A DNA stretch of 64,000 bases. Origin: Obrimoposthia wandeli (Eukaryota). This document shows positions 15,765-32,537 of this stretch, piece by piece (position 1 is the first letter of the stretch; the number at the start of each line of letters is the position of its first letter). Location: contig CDROCS010000253.1 in the NCBI GenBank assembly GCA_977020255.1, forward strand, positions 248,001 through 312,000. The letters run 5' to 3'. The notes beneath the pieces were generated by a model. That model made no database searches and was not told where the DNA came from. It saw only the letters and a program-made list of their open reading frames with translations. The position numbers and the translations under genes are program-made.

Positions 15765-16976
15765 TTAGCGTTCACCAAAAGATTCCGCCAATGTTTTACG
15801 CAAAGGTTTTAGTAAATAATTCAACACTGTACGATCACTTGTTTTAATATCAATCTGTGCTGTCATACCCGGTAAAATATCTAAAACCTTACCTGAAGTC
15901 GTTGTCACAGGATTTTTTTTTGTTGAAACATGTACCCGATAATATATCTCTTCACCTTGACTTTTTTCTTCTTTTAAGGTGTCAGCACTAACATAAACGA
16001 CCTCACCAATGACACCGCCATAAATAGTGTAATCGAATGGGTCAAAACGTATAGTGGCATTAAGTCCTTTACGCACTTGAGCAATATCTGCAGGGCTAAT
16101 TTTCGCTTCAAGAATTAACTCATCACCCACAGGAATGATTTGCATTAACTCTTCCCCAGCGCGCAATACACCGCCGATGGTCGTTACACGCACATTTTTC
16201 ACTATGCCAGGTAATAAAGCCTTAAAAATACTATCTTCTAATTGTTGTTTACGTTGCGTTAGCACTTGTACATTTTGAGCAATTTCATCTTCAGCTTTTG
16301 CTAATTCTGCCCCAGCATCTTCAAGGTAAGTATTTTTTCTATTCAATAATTTAGCTTCACTGTCATTCAAGCTCCTAGCGGCTCTAATAACTTCGGTACG
16401 ATTCACATCACCTGACACTGATAATTTTTTAATCAATTCAGATTCTTCTCGTGCTAAATCTACCCCTCTTTTTAACGCTTTTAACTCTTCAGCCAACGTT
16501 GTACTTTTTTGCTCAAATAAGGCACGTTCCACTTTGATCTGTTCTGGAAAACGCAGTAAATCATCAGCAAAAACTAACGTTTTATTGCCAAGAATTTCTG
16601 CCCGCAATCGCGCTGCTTTTGCTCTTAGTGCAGAAAGACGTGCATCAACCTCTTTCACTGCAGCGCCAATACGCGTGGTATCTAATGTCGCAATTATCTG
16701 TCCTTCAGTAACGCTATCTCCCTCTTTTACATATAAATTGGAAATAACACCTCCATCAACTGATTGAATAATTTGTACACGGCTACTGGCAATCACTTCG
16801 CCGGTACCTCGTGCGACTTGGTCAAGTCGAAAGTTTGAAGCCCACAGCACAAAAAAAACCAACCCGGCCAATATCCCCCATAACACTAATGAATAATTAC
16901 GCAGGTAATAATTCTCTAAACGCGCAGTTGACTCTTGATTATCGTCATCATCGGAAAAAAAGCTGTCAAATAACAT
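15765..16976 (-). CDS. HlyD-family periplasmic adaptor of a type I secretion system
   Basis: N-terminal TM, IIQSVDGG, lipoyl halves, coiled coil, LPGMTAQIDIKT and YLLKPL; start overlaps the ABC gene stop. Confidence 0.93.
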   Translation of the reverse strand: MLFDSFFSDDDDNQESTARLENYYLRNYSLVLWGILAGLVFFVLWASNFRLDQVARGTGEVIASSRVQIIQSVDGGVISNLYVKEGDSVTEGQIIATLDTTRIGAAVKEVDARLSALRAKAARLRAEILGNKTLVFADDLLRFPEQIKVERALFEQKSTTLAEELKALKRGVDLAREESELIKKLSVSGDVNRTEVIRAARSLNDSEAKLLNRKNTYLEDAGAELAKAEDEIAQNVQVLTQRKQQLEDSIFKALLPGIVKNVRVTTIGGVLRAGEELMQIIPVGDELILEAKISPADIAQVRKGLNATIRFDPFDYTIYGGVIGEVVYVSADTLKEEKSQGEEIYYRVHVSTKKNPVTTTSGKVLDILPGMTAQIDIKTSDRTVLNYLLKPLRKTLAESFGER

Positions 16977-19269
16977 GATTATCTCCTTGATTCACGTTAG
17001 TTGCGACAAAACCTTTTGGTGTGCGTAATGTTGGCGCTTCTTTACCTGAGACAGTTGCTTTATTTTTGGTAACATTAGCCATAATTTTGGACAGAACTTC
17101 CTCCGGCTTGCCATCATTGATTATCTCACCATGCTGCATCACAATAACACGATTCGCGATCTTCGCCGCTAAAGCAGGGCGATGAGTTGAAATAATTAAG
17201 ATATCATCGGCTTTAACATTGTCTTGTAATGCCTGTAATACTTTTTGTTCCGATTCATTATCTAAGGTCGCCGTAGGCTCATCCAACAACCATATTTTAG
17301 GTTGTGCTAAAAAGGTACGACCAAGGCCAACCAACTGGCGCTGACCGCCTGATAATCCTTCTCCGCCTTCACTAATGGCTAATTCCATACCTAGTGAATC
17401 ATCCGCAGCAATTTTATCGATACCAAGTTGCTCAGATACCTGTAACAAATGAGAGTCACTTACCGCGCCAGATAATGCTAAATTACTACGTAAGGTTCCC
17501 TTAAATAAATGCACACTTTGGGGTAAGTAACTGACCTGATCCGCGACAATATTGGGATCTATTTCCCATAAATCAGCCTGACCCAGTTTAATTCTGCCTT
17601 CCGCTGGTTTATATAAGCCTGCTAGCACTTTAAGTAAGGTAGATTTACCTGATCCTATCGCGCCAAGCAATACAACACGCTCACCCGCAGTAAAGGTTAA
17701 TTTATTAATATTTAATTGCCGTATAGGCGATTCAGGATAAGAAAACATTATCGCGTCTAAACTGATTTTTTTGGGTAACTCATCGGGTAATAATAAATTT
17801 TGATCTACGCGGCGCTCCGTGTTCAATAATAATACCTGATTCACCATTTCTAATGCTTGCGCAACATTTTGCCACTGCGAAAAATACTGCACACTTTGTG
17901 CAACTGGGGCAATAACACGGCCACCTAAAATACTACAAGCAATCAAGGCCCCCATGGTTAAATTACCCGCTTCAATTTGGCCAACACCAACAACAATAGC
18001 ACTGATATAAGCAGCAGTAGATAAACTGCCTGTACTAACAGTGGCAAAATTACTGATCGCTTTTTGGCGTATATTATAGCTCGAAATAGTTTGCGTTATT
18101 TCTTGCCATTGTGCTGAAAAACGCCATGTTGCGTTATTCGCCCGAATAGATTCAGCGCCTTTAATGGCATCAACTAATAACCCTTGTCGTTCATTAGAGC
18201 GCATCATTTGCTGTTTAAGTAATCGGCGTAATCGTCTTTGTGTGATCCAGCCTAAAGTCAGTGCTATAGGTAATAACATCAGATAAACCCAGCCAATATG
18301 ACCGCCAACAAGTGCAATCATACCAATAAAAAATAAAGCGAAAGGTAGGTCAACTAAAGCAAAAACAACCCCTGAGCTAAAAAATTGTCTGACCGAATCT
18401 AAACCACCCACTTGCGCGGCCAGTGTCCCCAAACTACGGGGGCGCTCATCTAACTGCAAGTGCATCACATGGTCAAACACTTGTTGTGACACCGCTTTAT
18501 CTACCGCACAACTGACACTGTCTAAGGTACGTGCTCGGATAGTTTTTAAAAACCAATCAAGTACAACGACAATGAACATCCCCATGACTAAGGTCGTTAG
18601 CGTGGCATACGCTAAGGTGGGTACCACTCGATCATAAACTTGCATTGCAAAAATAGCGGTCGATACCGCCAAAACATTAATAATAACCGTGGCAACAATA
18701 ATATCGATTAACCAACGACGGCTTTTAAACATTTCACTAAACACAAGTCGAGCGGCAATATTACCCTTTAATGAAAAAATGGAGGTTTGCTCACGTTTTT
18801 TTGCGACGCGCAGCCACAAGACAATGCCCGCTTCGAGTTGCTTGTGTGTACAATGCTCGCACTCACCTGCCTCATTCGTCACTAATAACTGATTATCTTT
18901 TGCATGTTCAACCAATACCCAGCCCGAGTGCGTAAAAAGCATGGCCGGTAATCTACGTTGGTCAAAACGCGCCCACCTGACTTGGGCTGCTTGTATACCT
19001 TTTAACTTTAATGCATTAAAAACAAAGTACAGTCGTTTAATCACCGATGCTTGTGGCAGTTGCATTTGAGCCTGCTGACAAGCGTCAACTAAAGCACCTT
19101 TTTGCACCGAAATCGCTAACTTATCCAATAAGTTTTTTAACACGTTAACCGGTAGCGCTTGTTGTAATAATGCCTGCTCTAACGTTAATTCATCTGCTGT
19201 ATTGGATGCAGCCGTTTGTGTGGATGCTTTTTCTACAGTTGGCTTTTCTAAGGTATTACTGCTGTTCAT
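16966..19269 (-). CDS. Type I secretion ABC transporter with C39-like N-terminal domain (LapB/HlyB-like)
   Basis: QVYDRV, six-TM domain, Walker A GAIGSGKST, LSGGQRQ, LLDEPT, H-loop STHR; no catalytic QxxxxDCG in the N-domain. Confidence 0.93.
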   Translation of the reverse strand: MNSSNTLEKPTVEKASTQTAASNTADELTLEQALLQQALPVNVLKNLLDKLAISVQKGALVDACQQAQMQLPQASVIKRLYFVFNALKLKGIQAAQVRWARFDQRRLPAMLFTHSGWVLVEHAKDNQLLVTNEAGECEHCTHKQLEAGIVLWLRVAKKREQTSIFSLKGNIAARLVFSEMFKSRRWLIDIIVATVIINVLAVSTAIFAMQVYDRVVPTLAYATLTTLVMGMFIVVVLDWFLKTIRARTLDSVSCAVDKAVSQQVFDHVMHLQLDERPRSLGTLAAQVGGLDSVRQFFSSGVVFALVDLPFALFFIGMIALVGGHIGWVYLMLLPIALTLGWITQRRLRRLLKQQMMRSNERQGLLVDAIKGAESIRANNATWRFSAQWQEITQTISSYNIRQKAISNFATVSTGSLSTAAYISAIVVGVGQIEAGNLTMGALIACSILGGRVIAPVAQSVQYFSQWQNVAQALEMVNQVLLLNTERRVDQNLLLPDELPKKISLDAIMFSYPESPIRQLNINKLTFTAGERVVLLGAIGSGKSTLLKVLAGLYKPAEGRIKLGQADLWEIDPNIVADQVSYLPQSVHLFKGTLRSNLALSGAVSDSHLLQVSEQLGIDKIAADDSLGMELAISEGGEGLSGGQRQLVGLGRTFLAQPKIWLLDEPTATLDNESEQKVLQALQDNVKADDILIISTHRPALAAKIANRVIVMQHGEIINDGKPEEVLSKIMANVTKNKATVSGKEAPTLRTPKGFVATNVNQGDNHVI

Positions 19270-20695
19270 ATGTATTTAATCCTGCGGGATCATCCAACAT
19301 ACCCATTAAGGTTAATAACTGTAACGACAACTGTTGCCAATCACTGGCTATCTGTACAAGTTGTAAACGTAGCTCTGTTAGCTCTCGTTGGTTATTAAGT
19401 ACCTCTACCCATGATTTACGTCCTGAATCATATTGGCGTAAAAACGATGCCATCGTTGCTTCAACAGCATCTACTATATCTTTTTGTGAACGCATTAAAT
19501 CGTGCTGCACGCTCCTATTAATCATTAACACATTGACTTGACGCCTAATATCATTCAAAGCAGACTTTACCTCTTCATCTGCAGCATTTAAACGCGCAGC
19601 AGCTGCGTTTACGCGCCCTACGCTGACTAAGCCAAGTCCTTCCATATTACTTTCAAACACTAAGCCTGCTCGAGTTTGATCGACATTCATGTCGTTATCA
19701 AAAACATCATACTCAACACGAAAAGAAATGGTCGGCAGTGAGGCCACTTTTTCCTGTTTTAAATTTAAACGTACCACCTTAAGTTGCTCACGCTTATAAC
19801 GAACATTCGCATCATTTTGCATCACTAATTTGTTAATCACCAAGCGGTCGGGCAAACCTAATAAACTATCATCAATAACACCTTCGGTAGAAACACTTAT
19901 TTGTGTTAATGACTTTAACTCAGTTTTAGCCACTAATTCTTCACCCAAAATACGTTGTAATCTTGAACGCGCTTGCAGTAAGCGCGAGTAAGCTAAACGT
20001 GTATCGGCATCAGAGGCTAACTGGCCTTGTTGACGACGAAAAATGCGACCATGTAAGCTTTCATGTTCTGTAATATTTTGTTTTGCAACGATAATACGTA
20101 ATTTAACCCCTTGTATTTTAGCGTAAATTTTTGCGGTATCGCTTATCAATTCACGCTGCGTTTGTATTAGGCTCCATTGCTCTGCGCTATAATTTGCGGT
20201 TGCTTCATCAATCGCTGTATCTATTTTACCAAAGGCCCACAGTGGTTGATTTAACCTTAGTGTGCCTTGGTCTGCATTATTATTTAAATTATTGGCCTGC
20301 GCAGACAACGTGGGGTAGCGTCTCGCTTTTGCACTGTCAATATTCGATTCATACGCATTAAGAGCTGCTTGTTGTCCTTTTAATGCGGGGTTATGGATGA
20401 TAACCGCTTGTAACGCGTTTAAAAAATCACGTGGTAATGTTGGCTTTTTAAGCTGGGTAAAATTATCCCGCCTTGATAGAGTAACTGATGATAAAGTCGA
20501 AGTATTATCCTCTATACTGGGGGTATGCTGCGCCTGAAACCCCTTTGTCTCTGTTGCTTTTATTGTCATTGATGTCAGTGCTATCAATGACAGTGCAATT
20601 GATAACAAGCTAGGCATAAATAAAGAATACCTACGTTTGGGGTTGCTATAACTATCTCTTGTTTTTAGCTTTATTTTTTTTATTATTTTTTGCAT
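19256..20695 (-). CDS. TolC-family outer membrane channel of a type I secretion system (AggA/LapE-like)
   Basis: Signal-like hydrophobic segment, two OEP repeats, QYDSGRKSWVEVLN motif; stop overlaps the ABC gene start. Confidence 0.88.
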   Translation of the reverse strand: MQKIIKKIKLKTRDSYSNPKRRYSLFMPSLLSIALSLIALTSMTIKATETKGFQAQHTPSIEDNTSTLSSVTLSRRDNFTQLKKPTLPRDFLNALQAVIIHNPALKGQQAALNAYESNIDSAKARRYPTLSAQANNLNNNADQGTLRLNQPLWAFGKIDTAIDEATANYSAEQWSLIQTQRELISDTAKIYAKIQGVKLRIIVAKQNITEHESLHGRIFRRQQGQLASDADTRLAYSRLLQARSRLQRILGEELVAKTELKSLTQISVSTEGVIDDSLLGLPDRLVINKLVMQNDANVRYKREQLKVVRLNLKQEKVASLPTISFRVEYDVFDNDMNVDQTRAGLVFESNMEGLGLVSVGRVNAAAARLNAADEEVKSALNDIRRQVNVLMINRSVQHDLMRSQKDIVDAVEATMASFLRQYDSGRKSWVEVLNNQRELTELRLQLVQIASDWQQLSLQLLTLMGMLDDPAGLNTYEQQ

Positions 20696-20770
20696 TAAAT
20701 ATCAAGCTCCCTGTTCGATTGATAAACCACTTCAGGTGTGAATAACAAGGCGCTGTTATTCCAATTTTTG

Positions 20771-23491
20771 TTAGACTATTTTGGTATTCGTTGTAAACGC
20801 ATCACTGATGAGCCGTTCAGCAAATAAGCCATTGTCTGGTTCGTGTTCATCAGGGGTAACGGCATCACTGGCAGTCAATCGTTGGTATTTTTTCTTAAAC
20901 ACCGCTATTTTATCGATTTCATCTTCTTGCTCATACGCTTTCAATAAGTTTTGTCGCCATTCTTTTTGCCAAGGACAGCTAACAACTGCTTTTTCAAGAT
21001 GGCGAATACCATCTTGAGCATGGTGCTTAGTTAAATAAACTAGCCCTACCATATAATGACACGCTGCATGCTCAGGGTTATGATGTAACATCTTTTTAAA
21101 GCACATTTCAGCGTCATCAAACCTCCCCTCTTTGTATAGTGCGACACCGTCGGTTAAAAAACCGGGCTCAGGCAAGGTGAAAAAATCAATCATAGGGTTT
21201 GATACTATTTTAGTATTAGTGCCTTTGATTAATGGTGTTAACTGGGTTTGATAACGCTGCCACTTCGCTTTTGAGGTTTTATAAATAGGTTGGCGTACCT
21301 GCCAAACACTAGCCGTTTTAACGGTACGCACTAACTCATTAAACTTAAGTACGCTGGGCTGCCAGTCTACGCCAATATAAGTCAACATTTTACGGGCGCT
21401 TCCTTCTAAGTCGTCAACGACATCTTCATAATTAATTTCTAGAATTTCACCGGGAAAGGTTTGCTGCCAATGATGCATTAACAAGTTATGATCGGCTAAC
21501 TGTTGTCCAATATGCTCTAGGTCATAAGCAAAACCCATACCGCCATGTTTGGCTTGATAATCAGTAAAATAATTCGACATGGCAATGTCGCGTGGGTCAC
21601 GACGTACTGAAATGATTTTAGCCTTGGGGAACAGAAATTTAATTAAGCCAATATTTTCAAAGTTATGCGGCATCTTATCCACCACATATTTCGACTCCGG
21701 CTTGTCTTCTGCAGCTAGCTCTTGTAATTCTTTTAGCACATTCTTTGCAATACCTGCGATGGTATAAGCATTAAAATCATCAATACAATCGGGGTATTTT
21801 CGGCCAGATCCAGTGTGGCGTTCCCAGCGATTCATCCCCTGTACGACTTGCGGAATAACCCCTAACTCACCGGCACCAAAAATATCACTGTGCCCTGATA
21901 AAATTTGTTCCACTAAGCTGGTGCCCGAGCGCGGCATGCCTAACACATACACAGGCATTGTTGATTCAACGCCGCAGTTAGGGCGATGCTGATATAAGGT
22001 TTTGTTAAAACAGACACGCAATCGCGCACAATCTTCGCGGTGTTTTTGAGCATTGTAGGGTAAAAATTTTTTACTGGCGTTATTGGCCTGTTTGGCAAAG
22101 GCAAAGGCTTTGTTATAGTCTTGCTGTTTTTCCCACGCGGCCGCTAATTGGAATAAAATACCAGCACGCAGCGAGCCCTCCATGCTGGGCTTATTGGCCG
22201 CGATGGCCATTTTATCTAAGGTGTCTACATCGTCAGGAAAACGCCGAGCATTAATTAGAGCCGAATAGCCTTTCAGTGGGTCAATGTCTTTAACACGTTC
22301 AAACAAGGCAACGGCTTCATCAATATACCCCTGCTGCATTTGTTGCTGACCTAAGCCTTGCAATGCCGGTAAAAAATGGCTGTGCTCTGCTAAAATATCA
22401 CGGTAGAGCTGCTCTGAAACCTCAAAATTTTGCTCTTGGCTTTCCACTTGCGCTAAGGCATTATTTGCCTGTGCTTGTTTCATTTTAATCAGCACTAAGG
22501 TTTGTTGCTCAGTAACTTCTAGCGCTTCTGCCAAACTGACCGCGCGCTCTGCCGCTTTGCGTGCCTTTTTATCAAAACGGTGCAAACAGGCTGTTGATAA
22601 CTGCACCCAAAGGGTGCTATTTTTTTCATCATTTTTTAGCGCCCTTTGCAGTAAATTAACCGCCTGCATAAAGTGCCCTTGCACTTGCGCTAGTTCGGCA
22701 AGTGCCATGCATAGCTCTACGTTATCATTATACGGCTTTAAATATTCACCTAAAATATCTGTTGCTTGTTGATGAAAATCGTTTTCCGCTAATACTTGGC
22801 TATAGCTTTTAACGCATTGTACTAATACGGCCTCTTCACAGTCACCCGCTTGCTGTTGCACACCTAACTGAGTGAGCCATTCTTCCGCAGGGGTAAATAA
22901 GCCTTGTGCTACCCACAGTTGTAATTGTGTAGTGTTCAGTTGCAACCAATATTGCTGATAAAGCGCATCTTCGAGCGAGTGATGATTAGCTAGCACTTCT
23001 CTTGCGCTATCGAGTTGATTTTGTGCCTGGCTGAGCTCATTTTGTGCAATATATACTGCCACTAAATTACGGTGTACGGTGAGGCGATCAGGAGTAATTA
23101 TTAATGATTTTTTAAAAAAGTGTTGTGCCTCAGTTAAGCGGCCAGAAGTTAAATAACAATACGCCAAACGTGCCAGCGCTAATGCATGGCTAGCTTGCTC
23201 CACCAAGACATCGCTTAACATTTTAATGGCGTCATCTATACGCTGCATCACAATTAATACCACCGCCAAATCACAGCGGGCATCGGCGTCAAGCACGTCA
23301 AAATGTTCAAGCGATTGTTGGTATAAGGCTTGGGTATTTTCTTTTAATCCCATATGGGCGTTAGCTGTCGCTAACAAAGGTAATACTGCCGGGTTGCCGC
23401 TGTCATACCAAAGAGATTGCGCTAATTCGAGCAAGCTAGGGTATTGTTGATTTTCAGCAAGTTGTCGCAACAGAATTAATTCGTTCATCAC
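20771..23491 (-). CDS. TPR-repeat protein with a PAPS-dependent sulfotransferase domain (TPST-like)
   Basis: N- and C-terminal TPRs; 5'-PAPS loop GMPRSGTSL, HSDIFGAGEL, DKMPHN, 3'-PAPS motif RDPRDIAMS, YEDVV. Confidence 0.88.
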   Translation of the reverse strand: MMNELILLRQLAENQQYPSLLELAQSLWYDSGNPAVLPLLATANAHMGLKENTQALYQQSLEHFDVLDADARCDLAVVLIVMQRIDDAIKMLSDVLVEQASHALALARLAYCYLTSGRLTEAQHFFKKSLIITPDRLTVHRNLVAVYIAQNELSQAQNQLDSAREVLANHHSLEDALYQQYWLQLNTTQLQLWVAQGLFTPAEEWLTQLGVQQQAGDCEEAVLVQCVKSYSQVLAENDFHQQATDILGEYLKPYNDNVELCMALAELAQVQGHFMQAVNLLQRALKNDEKNSTLWVQLSTACLHRFDKKARKAAERAVSLAEALEVTEQQTLVLIKMKQAQANNALAQVESQEQNFEVSEQLYRDILAEHSHFLPALQGLGQQQMQQGYIDEAVALFERVKDIDPLKGYSALINARRFPDDVDTLDKMAIAANKPSMEGSLRAGILFQLAAAWEKQQDYNKAFAFAKQANNASKKFLPYNAQKHREDCARLRVCFNKTLYQHRPNCGVESTMPVYVLGMPRSGTSLVEQILSGHSDIFGAGELGVIPQVVQGMNRWERHTGSGRKYPDCIDDFNAYTIAGIAKNVLKELQELAAEDKPESKYVVDKMPHNFENIGLIKFLFPKAKIISVRRDPRDIAMSNYFTDYQAKHGGMGFAYDLEHIGQQLADHNLLMHHWQQTFPGEILEINYEDVVDDLEGSARKMLTYIGVDWQPSVLKFNELVRTVKTASVWQVRQPIYKTSKAKWQRYQTQLTPLIKGTNTKIVSNPMIDFFTLPEPGFLTDGVALYKEGRFDDAEMCFKKMLHHNPEHAACHYMVGLVYLTKHHAQDGIRHLEKAVVSCPWQKEWRQNLLKAYEQEDEIDKIAVFKKKYQRLTASDAVTPDEHEPDNGLFAERLISDAFTTNTKIV

Positions 23492-23685
23492 TACTTCTTA
23501 ATATTGTTATCAGTTAATAATTAATTTATAGCTGTTTTGTACCTAATTTTTTTATAGCTAGTGCATACTTATTTATCGCATTACTGCGCAATTTTTTCAT
23601 TGGGGTAACCACTTGCCTAACTCGCAAGTCTGACTATGGTATTACTAAAACCTACAGAAAAACCTAACAGCTGTAATTGAGAAGT

Positions 23686-26600
23686 TTATACTCCCTGAGA
23701 TGTGGCAACACCGCTAGGTAATATCGTCAGGATTGCCCCCCCTTGTAATAAAGTCCCCACCCAACTTCCGGCCCATAGATCAGCAGTATCCATGCCGCCT
23801 GTGCGAAATGTTGTGATTCCCCCCCCTTTATTCAAAGCCACCAAGGCTGGATTGCTCCACGCCATAAGCGAAGCGGTAGCGGCCTTGCTGGCAGCGGGGT
23901 TTCCATCTTGGCCCAGTGGCGCGGCGCCACTGCCCACGAGAATAATGGTATCGTCTGAGCCCAAGTTTCCCGCTCCTGTCCACGGATTCGTCACGCTGAT
24001 ACCGACCGCACTAGTCGCCACCTTTATATAGATAGTATAAGTGGTGCCGCCATCAAAACTGCGACCCGAGTGTGAAGAGGTGTCGCCATCGGTGAGATCA
24101 AAGACAACAATCGAAGTATCTGCCTCAGTGGTAAAATCCAGCGTAGTCGAATCTGCAATACCGACGAAAGAATTACCTGCATTGTCATCGATGGCCGTGG
24201 CCGCTATTTGCACATTATAATTGGCCGAGTTATTGGCTAAATCAACGGTTGGGTTAATGGTTAGAGTATTGCCACTAACCGTCAACTGACCACTGTGATT
24301 GGCGACATCAATGGTAATTGTCTGCGCCCCGTCCGAGATAACAATATTGCCTGTGCCCAGAACGATACTCTCACTGAAGTTGAGAACGATATTATCCGTT
24401 ACCAATACCCCAGTGCCATTATCCGTCGGGGTACTCGAACTTAAAATAGGCGCCGTGGCATCGATCGCATCGCTGCTCTGACTAATCGCCGTGGTATAGC
24501 TGGCACTGGTGTTAGCGGATGAATCATCAATAGTCAGTGAAACGGGAATATCGGTGCCCGCTGGAACATCTGTACCGCCATTGATGATGGTAAATTTCGC
24601 GGTATAAGTGGTGCTGTTAGTGCGGGTCAAATTGCTCAGCACAAAACCACCGACACTGCCTGATATGTTCGTATATATATCACCCCCATCGTCAGCCACA
24701 GTTAAAGTAACCGTCACCACATCATCGACATTCATCGGAGCATCGGGGATACTGATCAGAGTAATAATCGGCGAAACTTCATCAAGATCGGTAATATCGA
24801 GCGTGATCGCTTTTTCGCTGCTGTTACCGGCAGCATCAGTCGCCACCACGGTAAAGTTGTAATCGGCTTTGTTTTCATCATCTGGATCCGCTGTTAAGGT
24901 TACTTCCCCCGTACTGCTGTTGATGGTAAATAAGGCCGCATCAGCACCCGTTTTTAAGCTGTAAGCTGTGGTGCCCGTGGCAACATCACCGCTGTCGGTT
25001 GACGTGACCGTGTACACCACTTGGCCGGCACCGCTATTTTCATCAATGGCGCTTGCGGTCGCCAACGAGGTGATCGTCGGCGAAACTTCATCAAGATCGG
25101 TAATATCGAGCGTGATCGCTTTTTCGCTGCTGTTACCAGCACCATCAGTCGCCACCACAGTAAAGTTGTAATCGGCTTTGTTTTCATCATCTGGATCGCG
25201 TTACACTACCAATGGCGTACTGCTGTTGATGGTAAATAAGGCCGCATCAGCACCCGTTTTTAAGCTGTAAGCTGTGGTGCCCGTGGCAACATCACCGCTA
25301 TCAGTTGACGTAACGGTATACACCACTTGACCAGCACCGCTATTTTCATCAATGGCGCTTGCGGTCGCCAACGAGGTGATCGTCGGCGCAACTTCATCCA
25401 GATCGGTAATATCGAGCGTGATCGCTTTTTCGCTGCTGTTACCGGCAGCATACTAGCGTCGCCACCAACGTAAAGTTGTAGTTTCATCGGGGTTAGTTTC
25501 ATCATCAGTTTCATCATCAGGGTTTGCCGTTAAGGTCACCGTAATATCACCGCCCCCGTACTGCTGTTGATGGTAAAATAAGGCCTGCATCAGCAAGCTG
25601 GCTTTTTGCTGTAAGCTGTAAGCTCGTGTCGGTGCCCGTGGCAGCACATCACCGCTATCGGTTGACGTGACCGTGTATACCACTTGGCCGGCACCACTTG
25701 GCCGGCACTTTCAATGTTTCCATCGGCGGCTTTGCGGGTCGCCAACGAGGTTATCGTCGGCGCAACATCATCAAGATCGGTAATATCGAGCATGATCGCT
25801 TGTTCGCTGCTGTTACCGGCGGCATCACTCGCCACCACGGTAAAGTTGTAATCGGCTTTGGTTTCATCATCCGGATTGGCCGTTAAGGTCACCGCCCCCG
25901 TACTGCTGTTGATGGTAAATAAGGCCGCATCAGCACCGGTTTTTAAGCTGTAAGCTGTGGTGCCCGTGGCAACATCACCGCTGTCGGTTGACGTGACCGT
26001 GTACACTACTTGACCAGCACCGCTATTTTCATCAATGGCTGTCGCGCTTGAAGCTGACGTGATAGTCGACGCAACTTCATCAAGATCGGTAATATCGAGC
26101 GTGATCGCTTTTTCGCTGCTGTTACCGGCAGCATCAGTCGCCACCACGGTAAAGTTGTAATCGGCTTTAGTTTCATCATCAGGGTTTGCCGTTAAGGTCA
26201 CCGCGCCCGTACTGCTGTTGATGATAAATAAGGCCGCATCAGCAACTGCTTTTAAGCTGTAAGTCGTGGCGCCCGTGGCAATATCACCACTGTCAGTTGA
26301 TGTGACCGTATACACCACTTGGTCGGCACCACTGTTTTCATCAATGGCGCTTGCGGTCGCCAACGAGGTGATCGTCGGCGCAACTTCATCAAGATCGGTA
26401 ATATCGAGCGTGATCGCTTTTTCGCTGCTGTTACCGGCAGCATCAGTCGCCACCACAGTAAAGTTGTAATCGGCTTTGTTTTCATCATCTGGATCCGCTG
26501 TTAAGGTTACTTCCCGTCGCTTGTTGATGATAAATAAGGCCGCATCAGCACCCGTTTTTAAGCTGTAAGCTGTGGTGCCCGTGGCAACATCACCACTGTC

Positions 26601-29600
26601 AGTTGACGTGACCGTGTACACCACTCTTGACCGCTGCTATTTTCATCAATGGCGCTTGCGGTCGCCAACGAGGTGATCGTCGGCGCAACTTCATCAAGAT
26701 CGGTAATATCGAGCGTGATCGCTTTTTCGCTGCTGTTACCGGCAGCATCAGTCGCCACCACGGTAAAGTTGTAATCGGCTTTGTTTTCATCATCTGGATC
26801 CGCTGTTAAGGTCATGCGCCCCGTACTGCTATCAGTGATGGTAACACCACTGAAGGCCGCATCATCACCTGCGTTTTACCTGGCAGTCGCCACCACGGTA
26901 AAGGTGCCGCCGTACTGCTGCAACCCGTATCACCACTGTCCGTTGATAACGGTACCGTATACACCACTTGGTCAGCACCACTGTATTTTCATCAATGGCG
27001 CTTTCGCCAACGAGGTGATCGTCGGCGCAACTTCATCCAGACGGTAATATCGAGCGTGATCGTTTTTCGCTGCTGTTACCGGCAGCATCAGTCGCCACCA
27101 CGGTAAAGTTGTAATCGGCTTTAGTTTTCATCATCATTTGCTTGTTAAGGTTACTTCCCCCGTACTGCTGTTGATGGTAAATAAGGCCGCATCAGCACCC
27201 GTTTTTAAGCTGTAAGCTGTGGTGCCCGTGGCAATATCACCACTGTCCGTTGATGTGACCGTATACACCACTTGGTCGGCACCACTGTTTTCATCAATGG
27301 CGCTTGCGGTCGCCAACGAGGTGATCGTCGGCGCAACTTCATCAAGATCGGTAATATCGAGCGTGATCGCTTTTTCGCTGCTGTTACCGGCAGCATCAGT
27401 CGCCACCACGGTAAAGTTGTAATCGGCTTTAGTTTCATCATCAGGGTTTGCCGTTAAGGTCACCGCGCCCGTACTGCTGTTGATGGTAAATAAGGCCGCA
27501 TCAGCAACTGCTTTTAAGCTGTAAGTCGTGGCGCCCGTGGCAATATCACCACTGTCCGTTGATGTGACCGTATACACCACTTGGTCGGCACCACTGTTTT
27601 CATCAATGGCGCTTGCGGTCGCCAACGAGGTGATCGTCGGCGCAACTTCATCAAGATCGGTAATATCGAGCGTGATCGCTTTTTCGCTGCTGTTACCGGC
27701 AGCATCAGTCGCCACCACGGTAAAGTTGTAATCGGCTTTAGTTTCATCATCAGGGTTTGCCGTTAAGGTCACTTCCCCCGTACTGCTGTTGATGGTAAAT
27801 AAGGCCGCATCAGCAACTGCTTTTAAGCTGTAAGTCGTGGCGCCCGTGGCAATATCACCACTGTCAGTTGATGTGACCGTATACACCACTTGGTCGGCAC
27901 CACTGTTTTCATCAATGGCGCTTGCGGTCGCCAACGAGGTGATCGTCGGCGCAACTTCATCAAGATCGGTAATATCGAGCGTGATCGCTTTTTCGCTGCT
28001 GTTACCGGCAGCATCAGTCGCCACCACGGTAAAGTTGTAATCGGCTTTGTTTTCATCATCTGGATCCGCTGTTACTTCCGGTACTTCCCCGTACTTGTTG
28101 ATGGTAAATAAGGCCGCATCATCACCTTTTGCTTGTAAGCTGTGGCGCCCACCCGTGGCAATCATCACCACTGCGCTGATGTGACCGTCACCACTTCACC
28201 ACTATTTTCATCAATGGCGCTTGCGGTCGCCAACGAGGTGATCGTCGGCGCAACTTCATCAAGATCGGTAATATCGAGCGTGATCGCTTTTTCGCTGCTG
28301 TTACCGGCAGCATCAGTCGCCACCACGGTAAAGTTGTAATCGGCTTTAGTTTCATCATCAGGGTTTGCCGTTAAGGTCACCGCGCCCGTACTGCTGTTGA
28401 TGGTAAATAAGGCCGCATCAGCAACTGCTTTTAAGCTGTAAGTCGTGGCGCCCGTGGCAATATCACCACTGTCAGTTGATGTGACCGTATACACCACTTG
28501 GTCGGCACCACTGTTTTCATCAATGAACGAGGTTATCGTCGGTGCAACATCATCAAGATCGGTAATATCGAGCGTGATCATCAGTCGCCACCACGGTTTG
28601 TAATCATCATCTAAGGTAACCGCGCCCGTACTGCTGTTGATGATAAATAAGGCCGCATCAGCGCTGCAATATCACCGCTATCGGTTGACGTGACCGTGTA
28701 CACCACTTGGCCAGCACCACTGTTTTCATCAATAGCGGTTGCTGTCGCCGCCGAGGTTATCGTCGGCGCGATTTCATCAAGATCGGTAATATCGAGCGTG
28801 ATCGCTTGTTCGCTGTTGTTACCAGCACTATCACTCGCCACCACAGTAAAACTGTAATCGGCTTTAGTTTCATCATCCGGATTTGCCGTTAAGGTCACTT
28901 CTCCTGAACTGCTGTTGATGGTAAATAAGGCCGCATCATCACCGACTTTTAAGCTGTAAATCGTGGCACCCGTGGCAATATCACCACTGTCAGTTGATGT
29001 GACCGTATACACTACTTGACCAGCACCGCTATTTTCATCAATGGCGCTTGCGGTCGCCAACGAGGTGATCGTCGGCGCAACTTCATCAAGATCGGTAATA
29101 TCGAGCGTGATCGCTTTTTCGCTGCTGTTACCGGCAGCATCAGTCGCCACCACGGTAAAGTTGTAATCGGCTTTGTTTTCATCATCTGGATCCGCTGTTA
29201 AGGTCACTTCCCCCGTACTGCTGTTGATGGTAAATAAGGCCGCATCAGCACCGGCTTTTAAGCTGTAAGCTGTGGCGCCCGTGGCAACATCACCGCTGTC
29301 AGTTGATGTGACCGTATACACTACTTGACCAGCACCGCTATTTTCATCAATGGCCATAGCTGTCATCGCCGAGGTTATAGTCGGGACTGCATCATCAAGA
29401 TCGGTAATATCGAGCGTGATCGCTTGCTCGCTGCTGTTACCGGCGGCATCAGTCGCCACCACGGTAAAATTGTAATCAGCTTTAGTTTCATCATCAGGGT
29501 TTGCCGTTAAGGTCACCGCGCCCGTACTGCTGTTGATGGTAAATAAGGCCACATCATCCCCCGCTTTTAAGCTGTAAGCTGTGGCGCTCGTGGCAACATC

Positions 29601-32066
29601 ACCGCTATCAGTTGACGTAACGGTATACACCACTTGACCAGCACCGCTATTTTCATCAATGGCGCTTGCGGTCGCCCCCGAGGTTATCGTTGGCGCAACT
29701 TCATCCAGATCAGTAATATCGAGCGTGATAGCTTGCTCGCTGCTGTTACCGGCGGCATCAGTCGCCACCACGGTAAAGCTGTAATCGGTTTTGCTTTCCT
29801 CATCAGGGTTTGTCGTTAAGGCCACCGTGCCCGTACTGCTGTTGATGATAAATAAGGCCGCATCATCACCAGCTTTTAAGCTATAAACCGTAGCGCCCGT
29901 AGCAACATCATCGCTATCGGTTGACGTGACTGTATACACCACTTGCCCAGCACCACTGTTTTCATCAATGGCGCTTGCGCTTGAAGCTGAAGTGATCGTC
30001 GGTGCGATTTCATCACGATCGGTAATATCGAGCTTGACAGATTGCTCTCTACTGTTACCGGCGGTATCACTCGCCACCACGGTAAAGTTGTAATCGGCGT
30101 TGGCTTCATCATCAGGATCGGGCGTTAGCGTCACTACCCCTGTAACTGTGTTAATAGTGAATAAAGCCCCATCATCACTCGCCTTTAAGCTGTAAGTGGT
30201 GACGCCCGTGGCAATATCACCGTTATCGATTGACGTGGCCGCGTACACCACTTGGCCAGCACCGCTATTTTCATCAATAGTGGTTGCTGTCGCCCCCGAG
30301 GTTATCGTTGGCGCGACTTCATCAAGATTGGTAATATCGAGCGTGATCGCTTGCTCGCTGCTGTTACCCGCGGCATCACTCGCCACCACAGTAAAGCTGT
30401 AATCGGCTTTGGCTTCTACATCAGGATTTGCCGTTAAGGTCACCACCCCCGTACTTCTCTTGATGATAAATAATGCCGCATCATCCCCCGTTAAGCTATA
30501 CGTGGCATTTTCATCGTTAGTGACTGCACGATAAACCACCTGATGACTGCCACTGTTTTCATCTAAAGTTGTGGCAATAGAGCCCGAATCAAAAACAGCG
30601 GTAGTAGTATCGACATTAATGATGATGGCAGAACTTTGATTTTGTTCGTTTATTTGAGAGGTAACTACAATGCGGCCATCACCACCAGCATTTACAACAG
30701 AACTGGGGACTAAAATGGTTGCTACGCCATCTAGCAGCTCAGCACCACTAATTTCAACACTATAACGTTGCACACCCCATTGGATAACAACCGTATCACC
30801 AATATTTACATTAGCTACCTGAACAGCAACACCTGCATCACTTTCTACTTTATTAACGCTATCCTGCGCCGCATCAATGACAGGAGGTCTAATCAATGCG
30901 CCATTTAAATCAACCACTTCAGCATTCACACCGGCTTCAAATGCCTCAACTCCATCCTGCAATAGTGAAAATCCAGAATTTGTAAAGTTTAACTCACCAT
31001 CAGCCTGTGTTTCTATCTCGCTTATTAATTTATCTATGGTCACATCAAGACTCGGCCTTGATGTTGAATCATCCCCATTTGAGGCTGCTAATGCATTGTC
31101 TGTTCCTGATAATAATGCCAAAATCTTACCATACTGCTCTGCGGCATCAAGGCCATCTGAACTGTCATAATTGGCATCTAAGATAGTCGTTACAGGGGCT
31201 AATATATCTTCAACACCGAATAATTTGGAAACATCAGCGTTTACTGCAACATTTTTAGTTGTTACTTTATTATCATCACTAATACCTGCCTGACGCGAAG
31301 CAAGTTCAGTTAAAGGAGTGATGCTCATAATGACATCATCAGAGTCATCCGTGTGTCCCATTGCACGCAGTGGCGAATTACCTAAACTAACTAGCTCTCC
31401 GATCGTTTCATCCAGATAATCACCCTCACCACCATTGCTATCGACAACCTTAGCTAATAATGGTCCTTGATAGCCATTGTTGATGGTAAAACTAACCGGC
31501 CCATCACTAAAATCATGCTCTTTACTTGCCAGCTCATTACCGTCTTTATCATACAATATAACAGTCACAACCGACTTAAAAGGACCCGCTACTGCCCCCA
31601 ATGTCACCTCGTAACTTGCAAAGTCATCATCATCATCCAACACTGCTACGCCAATCACATTAGCGCCAAGTAAGCCAACGGACCATGTCAAAGGAGATAG
31701 TCCTAAAAAGTCATTATTCTCTTGTGCTGCCCCCACAAGGGTTTCATTATCTTCAGCGTCCACAGGTTTATCTACACTGCTGACACTCATCCCTTCGGCG
31801 GGCGTAAAACTACCATCCATTGAGAAAGTAGCATTCATCGATTCACTATAAAAACCTTCAACTTGAGCAACAGTTATTCCTTCTACCTCTACTTCTAAAT
31901 TATCACCTTTACGCTTTAACATTAACTCCTGAGGAGCTTGTTGAGTTCCTTCTTCAACTACCGTATAAATTGCACCATTTAATGCGGTCAATATCTGTAA
32001 TTTGACCAAAGTAAATGTTTGACGCTCGCCATTTGCTAATTCAACAAGTAAAGTTAACTTTATCAT
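23686..32066 (-). CDS. Giant T1SS-secreted cadherin-repeat adhesin (Bap/Lap-like), about 2800 aa if intact; frame broken within the repeats
   Basis: ORF pieces 28611-32066, 28165-28581, 27134-28171, 25590-26624, 26558-26815 and 23686-25158 are segments of one repeat protein. It has a Bap-prefix-like N-terminus, cadherin repeats, an Ig-like (SbsA/Big_5-type) domain and a non-RTX C-terminus, and lies upstream of the T1SS genes. Confidence 0.85.
24780..30600 (-). repeat. Tandem array of about 19 cadherin-like repeats, 309 bp / 103 aa period
   Basis: Shadow ORFs recur every 309 bp (27205, 27514, 27823; 28707, 29016, 29325, 29634). Each unit carries IDENSG, PDDE, ATDAAG and ITDLDEVAP Ca2+-binding-type motifs. 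Confidence 0.92.
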
Positions 32067-32083: not shown

Positions 32084-32537
32084 GGCTCTCTTAGCACGGA
32101 ATATTCTTGGATTAAAATATCTAAATTAATCTGCTATTTAATACCATACTCAACGATTCTTTTTATTGCTTTGCTGCCCCACCTTCAAGAAATCTACACC
32201 AAGCAAGATAATTACCCAAATAAGCTGTTTCCACATCATTAAGAGCGATCAAGCTATTACAAGTAATGTCATGTTTCTTGAAGAAGTTTTTATAGGCATG
32301 AGCGCTATCAGTACAGAGAATTGAATCTTTATTTACAATCAGTTTGAGGGTTTCACTAATAGCGTCATTATTGTGTTCACCAAGCACATAGTCTGTCGTT
32401 ATACCGCTTCGTTCTTTAACAACGAGTACCACTATTTTATCCTCGTCAAAGCGTTTATCGCCTTGTTTACCATGCTTTTGTATGCAGATAAAATTGAAAA
32501 GTGAATGACTAATTTTTCTAAATATATGATTGTTCAT
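32084..32537 (-). mobile_element. Degenerate IS1595-family (ISXO2-like) transposase remnant
   Basis: ORF 32163-32537 has VLVVKERSG, LCTDSAHAY and AYLGNYLAWCRFLE, but lacks the N-terminal Zn-ribbon and the HIQNVN region. Possible right end GGCTCT at 32084 (uncertain). Confidence 0.7.

Follow-up and report, generated by a model that had tools for sequence, protein, structure and literature searches.

The 64,000-nt stretch of DNA analysed here (the window, part of contig CDROCS010000253.1 of the Obrimoposthia wandeli assembly GCA_977020255.1, with all positions counted from its first nucleotide) carries a module of co-oriented genes for a giant repeat-bearing protein (the cargo), a sulfotransferase flanked by tetratricopeptide repeats (TPRs) and a type I secretion system (T1SS), all on the minus strand. 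The cargo gene (23686-32066) is followed, after a gap of 194 bp (23492-23685) in which strand-specific prediction placed no terminator on the coding strand, by an intact gene for a 906-aa TPR-Sulfotransfer_3-TPR protein (20771-23491) and by three exporter genes lying side by side, which complete the T1SS. These encode a 479-aa outer-membrane channel of the TolC family (19256-20695; OEP, 1e-31; TIGR01844 at 101 bits, under its 225-bit cut-off), a 767-aa ATP-binding cassette (ABC) permease/ATPase closest to the LssB/HlyB type (16966-19269) and a 403-aa periplasmic adaptor of the HlyD family (15765-16976; TIGR01843 at 320 bits against a cut-off of 209), with overlaps of 14 bp between the TolC and ABC genes and 11 bp between the ABC and HlyD genes. 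The ABC protein matches ABC_tran and ABC_membrane, has TIGR03375 (LssB type) as its best NCBIfam family (606.8 bits vs a cut-off of 693.1 bits) and HlyB as its closest match in the PDB (6e-60); Peptidase_C39 matched neither the whole protein nor its N-terminal 190 aa, and the N-terminal extension of ~180 aa gave zero matches in Pfam and NCBIfam. All four genes, from the sulfotransferase to HlyD, are intact and share 86-97% identity with orthologues in Colwellia. A preliminary description of this DNA had listed five co-oriented genes including an adhesin of ~2800 aa; the co-orientation and the overlaps stand, and the adhesin proves to be split, with no single open reading frame (ORF).

The enzyme consists of TPRs at residues ~1-480, a sulfotransferase domain at ~510-720 (21332-21964 in the window) and further TPRs at ~775-870, so that about 600 of its 906 residues belong to TPRs, and it is 91% identical to a Colwellia orthologue. 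The catalytic domain matches Sulfotransfer_3 (PF13469) at 149.3 bits against a cut-off of 27 (E 2.5e-43) and contains both the 5'-phosphosulfate loop PRSGTS and the 3'-phosphate motif RRDPRD...S expected for binding 3'-phosphoadenosine-5'-phosphosulfate (PAPS). Residues P520, R521, S522, G523, T524, R630, R631, D632, P633, R634, D635 and S639 are invariant in 15 orthologues, as are E542 and K606 among the orthologues of the enzyme, and the PAPS loops with the catalytic Glu and Lys remain invariant in sets of 15 to 24. In HMMER alignments, the Glu of GAGELG pairs with the second Glu of CGEET in the tyrosylprotein sulfotransferases (TPSTs), which is their catalytic Glu, and the Lys of DKMPHN pairs with the Lys of the TPST motif NKDP; we take these catalytic residues to be Glu99 and Lys158 in TPST2 numbering. 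When the catalytic region was compared with all PDB sequences, the best matches were tick TPST (2e-11), human TPST1 (9e-10) and TPST2 (5e-8), followed by the CurM sulfotransferase (1.5e-5) and by cytosolic sulfotransferases at 0.1 or worse. Similarly, the predicted catalytic fold (predicted local distance difference test, pLDDT, 77) retrieved TPST chains as its top 13 Foldseek matches (E 4.5e-11 to 6e-9, TM ~0.55), with CurM and OLS next at ~1e-8. The resemblance to TPSTs in the preliminary description is thereby borne out by sequence, fold and catalytic residues, and the motifs quoted there, including RDPRDIAMS, are present and align with those of TPSTs. The N-terminus of the enzyme (VMNELILLRQLAENQQYPSLLELAQ...) has neither a signal peptide nor a hydrophobic membrane anchor, which fits action in the cytoplasm; its N-terminal TPRs find the TPR region of OGT as their best natural match in the PDB, and weak matches to the SycD/LcrH and SctY hidden Markov models (HMMs) were also seen. 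Sequence and modelled fold together characterize the enzyme as a soluble, TPR-flanked, TPST-like sulfotransferase with predicted catalytic activity, for which tyrosine specificity can reasonably be expected. A 527-aa paralogue combining TPRs with Sulfotransfer_3 is encoded ~20 kb before the window (C253:227089-228672, on the same chromosome), where it adjoins a TonB-dependent receptor and a sigma-54 two-component pair, and similar paralogues of 500-900 aa occur without the tail domain described below in ~13% of sampled Gammaproteobacteria.

The cargo opens with a piece of 1151 aa (28611-32066), which contains an N-terminal domain of ~500 aa and then six in-frame repeats of 103 aa, continues as a broken array of cadherin-like repeats with a 309-bp period (25159-28610) and ends in an open piece of 490 aa (23686-25158) with one cadherin repeat, a Big_5 domain and a C-terminal tail domain. 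The N-terminal domain gave no Pfam or NCBIfam match in the first 500 aa and is 40-44% identical to that of other cargos. The tail domain is specific to this family and occupies 147 aa here (23689-24129) and ~165 aa in other cargos, where it forms the common C-terminus, ending in ...LTSQGLA, of proteins that range from a few hundred to >3,300 aa and carry varied repeats. Its consensus is DTSIVVFDLv.G.SS.HSGRTFDA..SYTIYIRV...W..W.GA.NLG.DD.IVLVG.G...dLW.G.W...Y...MP.GiLTSQGLA-COOH, which the window copy follows as ...DTSIVVFDL..G.SS.HSGR.F.....YTIY...NLGSDD.I.LVG.G...DLW.G.W...SGVATSQGV; the terminal peptide of the domain reads ...MPAGILTSQGLA. No Pfam or NCBIfam match to the tail domain was found in local libraries, of which the Pfam copy was without PF28399. 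PF28399 itself stands in the precomputed Pfam lists of three tail-domain proteins (P0122, P0124 and P0126). An AlphaFold2 model of the domain is beta-rich (pLDDT 88, predicted TM score 0.87); Foldseek returned nothing from the PDB at E <=0.001, VIA-align on 48,161 chains reached a best Z of 3.8, and among 2.3 million AlphaFold fold clusters the model matched its own family only. The C-terminal region of a Marinomonas ice-binding adhesin, which gave the sole long alignment (Z 3.0), was rejected as a relative because the match is too weak. By sequence and predicted fold, the tail domain is therefore regarded as previously undescribed. A profile of the domain, run exhaustively against 1.84 billion representative proteins, recovered just 360 members, nearly all with a single copy at the extreme C-terminus; the tail region, used as query in a word-indexed protein search, gave only six proteins, all with generic names. 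About ten giants (e.g., P0127 of 7573 aa, as well as P0125, P0128, P0123 and P0129) contain three to nine internal copies of positions 2-135, which indicates that the core is a reusable structural domain and that a distinct element at the terminus is formed by the last ~28 residues (...LTSQGLA). Among 138 terminal copies, conservation reaches at least 93% at D11, S17, S18, H20, S21, R23, F25, Y31, Y34, W58 and D68 and in the QGL at the very end, with Y31 present in 137/137 and Y34 found as 133 Tyr and 4 Phe, and these two are the only near-invariant tyrosines. The near-invariant polar cluster of D11, S17, S18, H20, S21 and R23 has the appearance of a site for binding or catalysis, more than that of a simple signal for secretion.

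The gene arrangement recurs in distant proteobacteria, far beyond chance. A genome scan with one genome per species yielded 489 enzyme loci, and the neighbourhoods of the best 80 were read. The enzymes form one orthologue group, with 53-91% full-length identity across orders and a mean column identity of 65% over 15 members, and the loci belong to Gamma-, Beta- and Zetaproteobacteria, Desulfobacterota and one metagenome-assembled genome of Myxococcota. A same-strand ORF ending in the tail domain lies directly upstream of the enzyme in 55/74 loci with enough upstream flank, and TolC, ABC and HlyD genes lie directly downstream in 40/60 loci with at least 5.5 kb of downstream sequence, so that this sulfotransferase is indeed enriched beside giant proteins and their T1SS. 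In Enterobacteriaceae (Kosakonia, Phytobacter, Silvania and Leclercia), the order is ABC-HlyD-cargo-enzyme and the stop codon of the cargo gene overlaps the start of the enzyme gene; cargo and enzyme are translationally coupled there. Clustering of all ORFs from the 80 loci gave only six recurrent families, namely the enzyme, the cargo, ABC, HlyD, TolC and adenosine-5'-phosphosulfate (APS) kinase. Co-occurrence was followed in a class-level sample of 201 genomes and an order-level sample of 251 genomes, in which the tail domain and the full-length enzyme orthologue fell in the same 2 and the same 5 genomes, respectively, with no discordant genome in either sample, counts that are not a probability since related genomes are not independent. 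In a further 26 of the 201 genomes, the tail domain is missing and the enzyme is represented only by shorter TPR-sulfotransferase paralogues, which score 210-313 bits and align over positions ~350-755. Each positive genome encodes one enzyme and one to six tail-domain ORFs. Taken together, synteny and co-occurrence connect the enzyme with this tail domain in particular and make a strong functional link. In some genomes, the tail-domain ORFs number two to six and are frequently arrayed in tandem, upstream of the single sulfotransferase gene; one enzyme with its exporter appears to serve several cargos. The module is read as conserved and horizontally spread, and the window contains one copy of it.

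The supply of the sulfate donor is also encoded within part of these loci. In ~15/80 loci, the module includes a gene for APS kinase (PF01583, 1e-60 to 5e-67), placed just after HlyD or just after the enzyme. These loci come from Marinomonas, Neptunomonas, Marinobacterium, Marinobacter, Pseudomonas and Burkholderiales (for example L062:17218-17814, L015:17358-18074, L021:12758-13381 and L010:10416-11102, with ~11 further loci), and the gene is absent from the loci of Colwellia, Vibrio and enterobacteria. The lineages that bear the kinase gene presumably assimilate sulfate via APS reductase and need no PAPS for that purpose. That the module brings along a gene for making PAPS argues strongly for a catalytic use of the enzyme. 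The preliminary description had pointed to cysDN and cysC as genes to be confirmed elsewhere in the genome, and cysC and cysD are both found on the window's own chromosome.

With gene linkage, co-occurrence, conserved catalytic residues, PAPS supply and the nearest structural family as its direct support, the module is read, with a confidence somewhat better than even, as a system in which the TPR-sulfotransferase O-sulfates a giant cargo before export through the T1SS. Its parts would be at least one giant cadherin-repeat surface protein with the common tail of ~165 aa, a TPR-flanked PAPS-dependent enzyme and a dedicated TolC/ABC/HlyD exporter, joined by APS kinase in lineages whose sulfate assimilation yields no PAPS. 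HlyA-type T1SS cargos are exported unfolded and C-terminus first. We infer the cargo as acceptor, the residue modified, the binding role of the TPRs and the order of events: the TPR arrays would grip the unfolded cargo, most likely via its tail domain or the ...LTSQGLA end, the catalytic domain would move sulfate from PAPS to cargo hydroxyls in the cytoplasm, and the exporter would then move the cargo, probably in sulfated form, out of the cell, C-terminus first. As acceptors, the strongest candidates would be either Tyr31 or Tyr34, which are invariant in the tail domain, or else tyrosines in an acidic setting, of which GDYLDE in the N-terminal domain is an example. This last motif is conserved in the cargos of the window, Colwellia, Kosakonia, Pseudomonas and Oceanisphaera and others (the window copy, GGEGDYLDETI, lies at cargo residue 217, about 31410-31440), and as G-D-Y-L/I-D-E it fits the usual context of tyrosine sulfation, although it could equally have a Ca-binding or structural role. 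The preliminary description had proposed that the enzyme sulfates the adhesin or its glycans in the cytoplasm before export, a proposal supported in part by the linkage of enzyme, cargo and T1SS and by the lack of a signal peptide; the intact cargo of 2800 aa and its Lap/Bap type do not stand. A wider formulation, in which a TPR-armed TPST-like enzyme recognizes a tail of unseen fold that is also the T1SS signal, and in which sulfated cadherin-repeat proteins are exported by a dedicated bacterial pathway of tyrosine (or other O-) sulfation for giant secreted surface proteins, is put forward more tentatively, as possible but somewhat short of an even chance.

Several observations weigh against sulfation of the cargo. 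In about one-third of the adequately flanked loci, no exporter lies directly downstream, and the cargo gene is broken in the window as the sequence stands. A beta-strand is predicted at YTIYI, at or within which Tyr31 and Tyr34 fall; folding alone may account for their conservation, and their surroundings are non-acidic, unlike those of typical TPST sites. GDYLDE is found in only 11/26 full-length cargos, one of which (L015) has Phe in place of Tyr, and was for this reason rejected as a general acceptor. In addition, CurM-type sulfotransferases, which act on non-protein acceptors, are just ~100-fold weaker than TPSTs in the Foldseek comparison of the modelled fold. When enzyme residues 55-906 and the tail domain were modelled as a complex, with the chains folded without alignments, the tail reached a pLDDT of 24-25, and this model speaks neither for nor against sulfation of the cargo.

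The break in the cargo gene bears on whether the system still works in this genome. The region 23686-32066 has 84 stops in its main frame, and the coding path shifts frame near 28614, 28145, 26628 and 25542, with more interruptions at 27137-26875 and 25600-25200, which leaves at least seven open pieces (28611-32066, 28165-28581, 27134-28171, 26558-26815, 25590-26624, 25260-25517 and 23686-25158), every one of them still composed of cadherin-like 103-aa repeats. Indels amount to 9% in the broken repeat array vs none in the intact array, and several 1-bp indels are bunched within ~150 bp, although DNA alignment of the repeat units to one reference unit was too noisy for placing every indel; runs of N are absent from the cargo region. 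These at least four frame changes and extra stops could mean that the cargo gene is a true pseudogene decaying by repeat indels, the enzyme and exporter being relics or serving another cargo, and two further observations favour such a reading: a remnant of an IS1595-family transposase (a 124-aa ORF at 32163-32537, minus strand, matching the middle of the transposase at 2.4e-10) lies immediately upstream of the cargo gene, and the chromosome has only this one tail-domain ORF. However, the enzyme, TolC, ABC and HlyD genes are intact and close to their Colwellia orthologues, and Colwellia demingiae has an intact cargo orthologue of 2612 aa. Short-read unitigs and contigs of the strain-bearing runs over 24700-28700 cover many repeat stretches, including those adjoining the indels, at at least 99% identity, whereas the best-matching run, with its short unitigs, gives no cover at 25504-25637, 26442-27111 and 28452-28585, exactly where the dense indels fall; these stretches contain or adjoin the frame changes near 25542, 26628 and 28614, and the change at 28145 lies in a thinly covered stretch. 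Such holes are suggestive of a consensus error and are no proof of one. Frameshifts affect nearly all genes of a second module, on contig C1957, so the assembly is error-prone on at least that contig. An assembly error is accordingly more likely than true decay of the cargo gene, and a defunct system is held to be a serious possibility of about one chance in three rather than the expected case. The second copy (HlyD, ABC, TolC, sulfotransferase and tail-domain ORF; C1957:1-20000) is full, lies on a contig of 51.7 kb from another organism, and has its TolC and sulfotransferase genes split into pieces, which points to a noisy consensus there. The assembly as a whole (1.35 Gb in 6,912 contigs, with at least 18 cysD and 9 cysC matches) is metagenome-like and contains many bacterial genomes, and the window lies on a 4.68-Mb contig that resembles a complete Colwellia-like chromosome, a label that follows from the closest enzyme orthologues being those of Colwellia (89-91% identity). 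The repeat array (24000-30000) has a G+C content of 50-51% vs 35-41% in the rest of the window, which is tentatively attributed to repeats rich in Ala, Gly, Asp and Thr.

If the module is functional, the enzyme could still act on something other than the cargo. Sulfation of a non-protein acceptor, such as a surface glycan, lipopolysaccharide or an exopolysaccharide precursor, would make the tail domain a binder of the sulfated polymer that anchors the cargo, and the gene linkage would then be that of ligand and receptor, not of enzyme and substrate. T1SS surface proteins without a retention module need an anchor, and neither LapG nor a retention module was found for this cargo; the almost invariant polar cluster of the tail could form the binding site, no typical acidic Tyr site is universal among cargos, and the non-protein sulfotransferases CurM and OLS are the next-best structural matches. 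Against this, TPSTs are clearly the nearest relatives of the enzyme and TPR arrays are protein-binding modules, genes for glycosyltransferases or polysaccharide synthesis never recur in the 80 loci, and translation of the enzyme is coupled to that of the cargo in Enterobacteriaceae, all of which makes a non-protein acceptor unlikely. The enzyme might instead be mainly a secretion chaperone or adaptor that keeps the giant cargo fit for export or hands its tail to the ABC protein, its sulfotransferase activity being secondary, regulatory or aimed at the secretion machine. The large share of TPRs in the protein would suit this role, as would the use of TPR proteins as chaperones in type III secretion (hence the interest of the weak SycD/LcrH and SctY matches) and the strongly conserved free C-terminal peptide of the cargo, a kind of ligand that is bound by TPR clamps. 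The PAPS-binding and catalytic residues, however, are all invariant across distant orthologues and a dedicated APS kinase accompanies ~15 module loci, from which it is argued that catalysis is the selected function; a chaperone role as the main one is therefore considered highly improbable, and sulfation of the cargo before export remains the preferred reading.

To our knowledge, bacterial protein sulfation is known essentially from one system, RaxST/RaxX. With the module, giant surface proteins from hundreds of species of marine, soil and enteric bacteria would be added to it. If the reading is true, these would be the earliest known case of sulfated adhesins in bacteria, and the TPST system of animals would gain a counterpart, perhaps a related one, among prokaryotes; the closeness of the enzyme to animal TPSTs also bears on the origin of eukaryotic tyrosine sulfation. 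It names a candidate enzyme-substrate pair for which cultured strains with intact loci exist, such as Colwellia demingiae ACAM 459, Pseudomonas borbori DSM 17834 and Phytobacter diazotrophicus DSM 17806, and it defines a cargo tail domain without relatives in Pfam, NCBIfam, the PDB or AlphaFold clusters, which offers a way to recognize the cargos of one T1SS subtype. If a surface protein that is cadherin-like and binds Ca were sulfated, its adhesion, charge, ice or mineral binding, or host recognition could change.

A search of the full-text literature surfaced papers on RaxST and an unrelated study of a dioxygenase-sulfotransferase neighbourhood (PMC2938197); it turned up no account of a link between a TPR-sulfotransferase and a T1SS cargo, an absence that is no proof. 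In its design, a long TPR superhelix fused to a protein-modifying transferase, the enzyme resembles OGT and SPINDLY, a likeness of design only, as the catalytic domain, donor and chemistry of OGT are unrelated. The nearest solved relatives are TPST1 and TPST2 (PDB 3AP1, 5WRI and 8W5Z), with which the 5'-phosphosulfate-binding loop, the 3'-phosphate-binding motif and the catalytic Glu and Lys align at an identity of ~20-23%; the TPSTs are Golgi-lumenal type II membrane proteins without TPRs, whereas the enzyme described here is predicted to be soluble, cytoplasmic and TPR-flanked. The predicted export of a giant repeat cargo by an ABC protein whose best family, at a score under the cut-off, is the LssB/LapB one, with HlyD and TolC partners, recalls LapA/LapBCE, SiiE, MpIBP and BapA, and the N-terminus of the cargo is Bap-prefix-like, by eye only. 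The cargo differs from the Lap type in giving no match to a retention-module HMM, in lacking RTX nonapeptides and a C-terminal target domain of the VCA0849 type, and in having its own tail domain, which is found only with this enzyme. HemolysinCabind was matched in none of the window cargo pieces and in none of three full-length cargos (Colwellia, Kosakonia and Pseudomonas), and none of the 13 matches to LapG (PF06035, Peptidase_C93) in the assembly lies on the window chromosome, so that the assignment of the cargo to the Bap/Lap-type adhesins in the preliminary description is withdrawn. A cargo-modifying enzyme encoded in a T1SS operon and acting on unfolded cargo before export is also familiar from HlyC and CyaC of the RTX operons (hlyCABD), although those enzymes acylate Lys rather than catalyze the O-sulfation proposed here, have an unrelated fold and serve RTX repeats that are absent here. 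In Xanthomonas oryzae, RaxST is encoded beside RaxABC, the exporter of the molecule that it modifies, RaxX, and the modification is cytoplasmic (PMC4646787, PMC6637879). Both systems have the gene of a PAPS-dependent, TPST-like sulfotransferase adjacent to genes for ABC, membrane-fusion and outer-membrane components of an exporter. RaxX, however, has ~60 residues and a leader peptide that is cleaved by a C39 transporter, whereas the cargo here is of giant size and combines cadherin repeats with a C-terminal domain; the RaxABC transporter has a C39 peptidase, whereas that of the window is closest to the LssB/HlyB type and has no C39 match; and the enzyme here is three times larger than RaxST, with TPR arrays on both sides. 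The parallel with RaxST and RaxABC drawn in the preliminary description therefore holds loosely, for the sulfotransferase gene beside a T1SS and not for the C39 transporter or the leader peptide. Beside these systems, the module takes its place as a T1SS with a cargo-modifying enzyme, whose chemistry on the cargo we infer to be sulfation.

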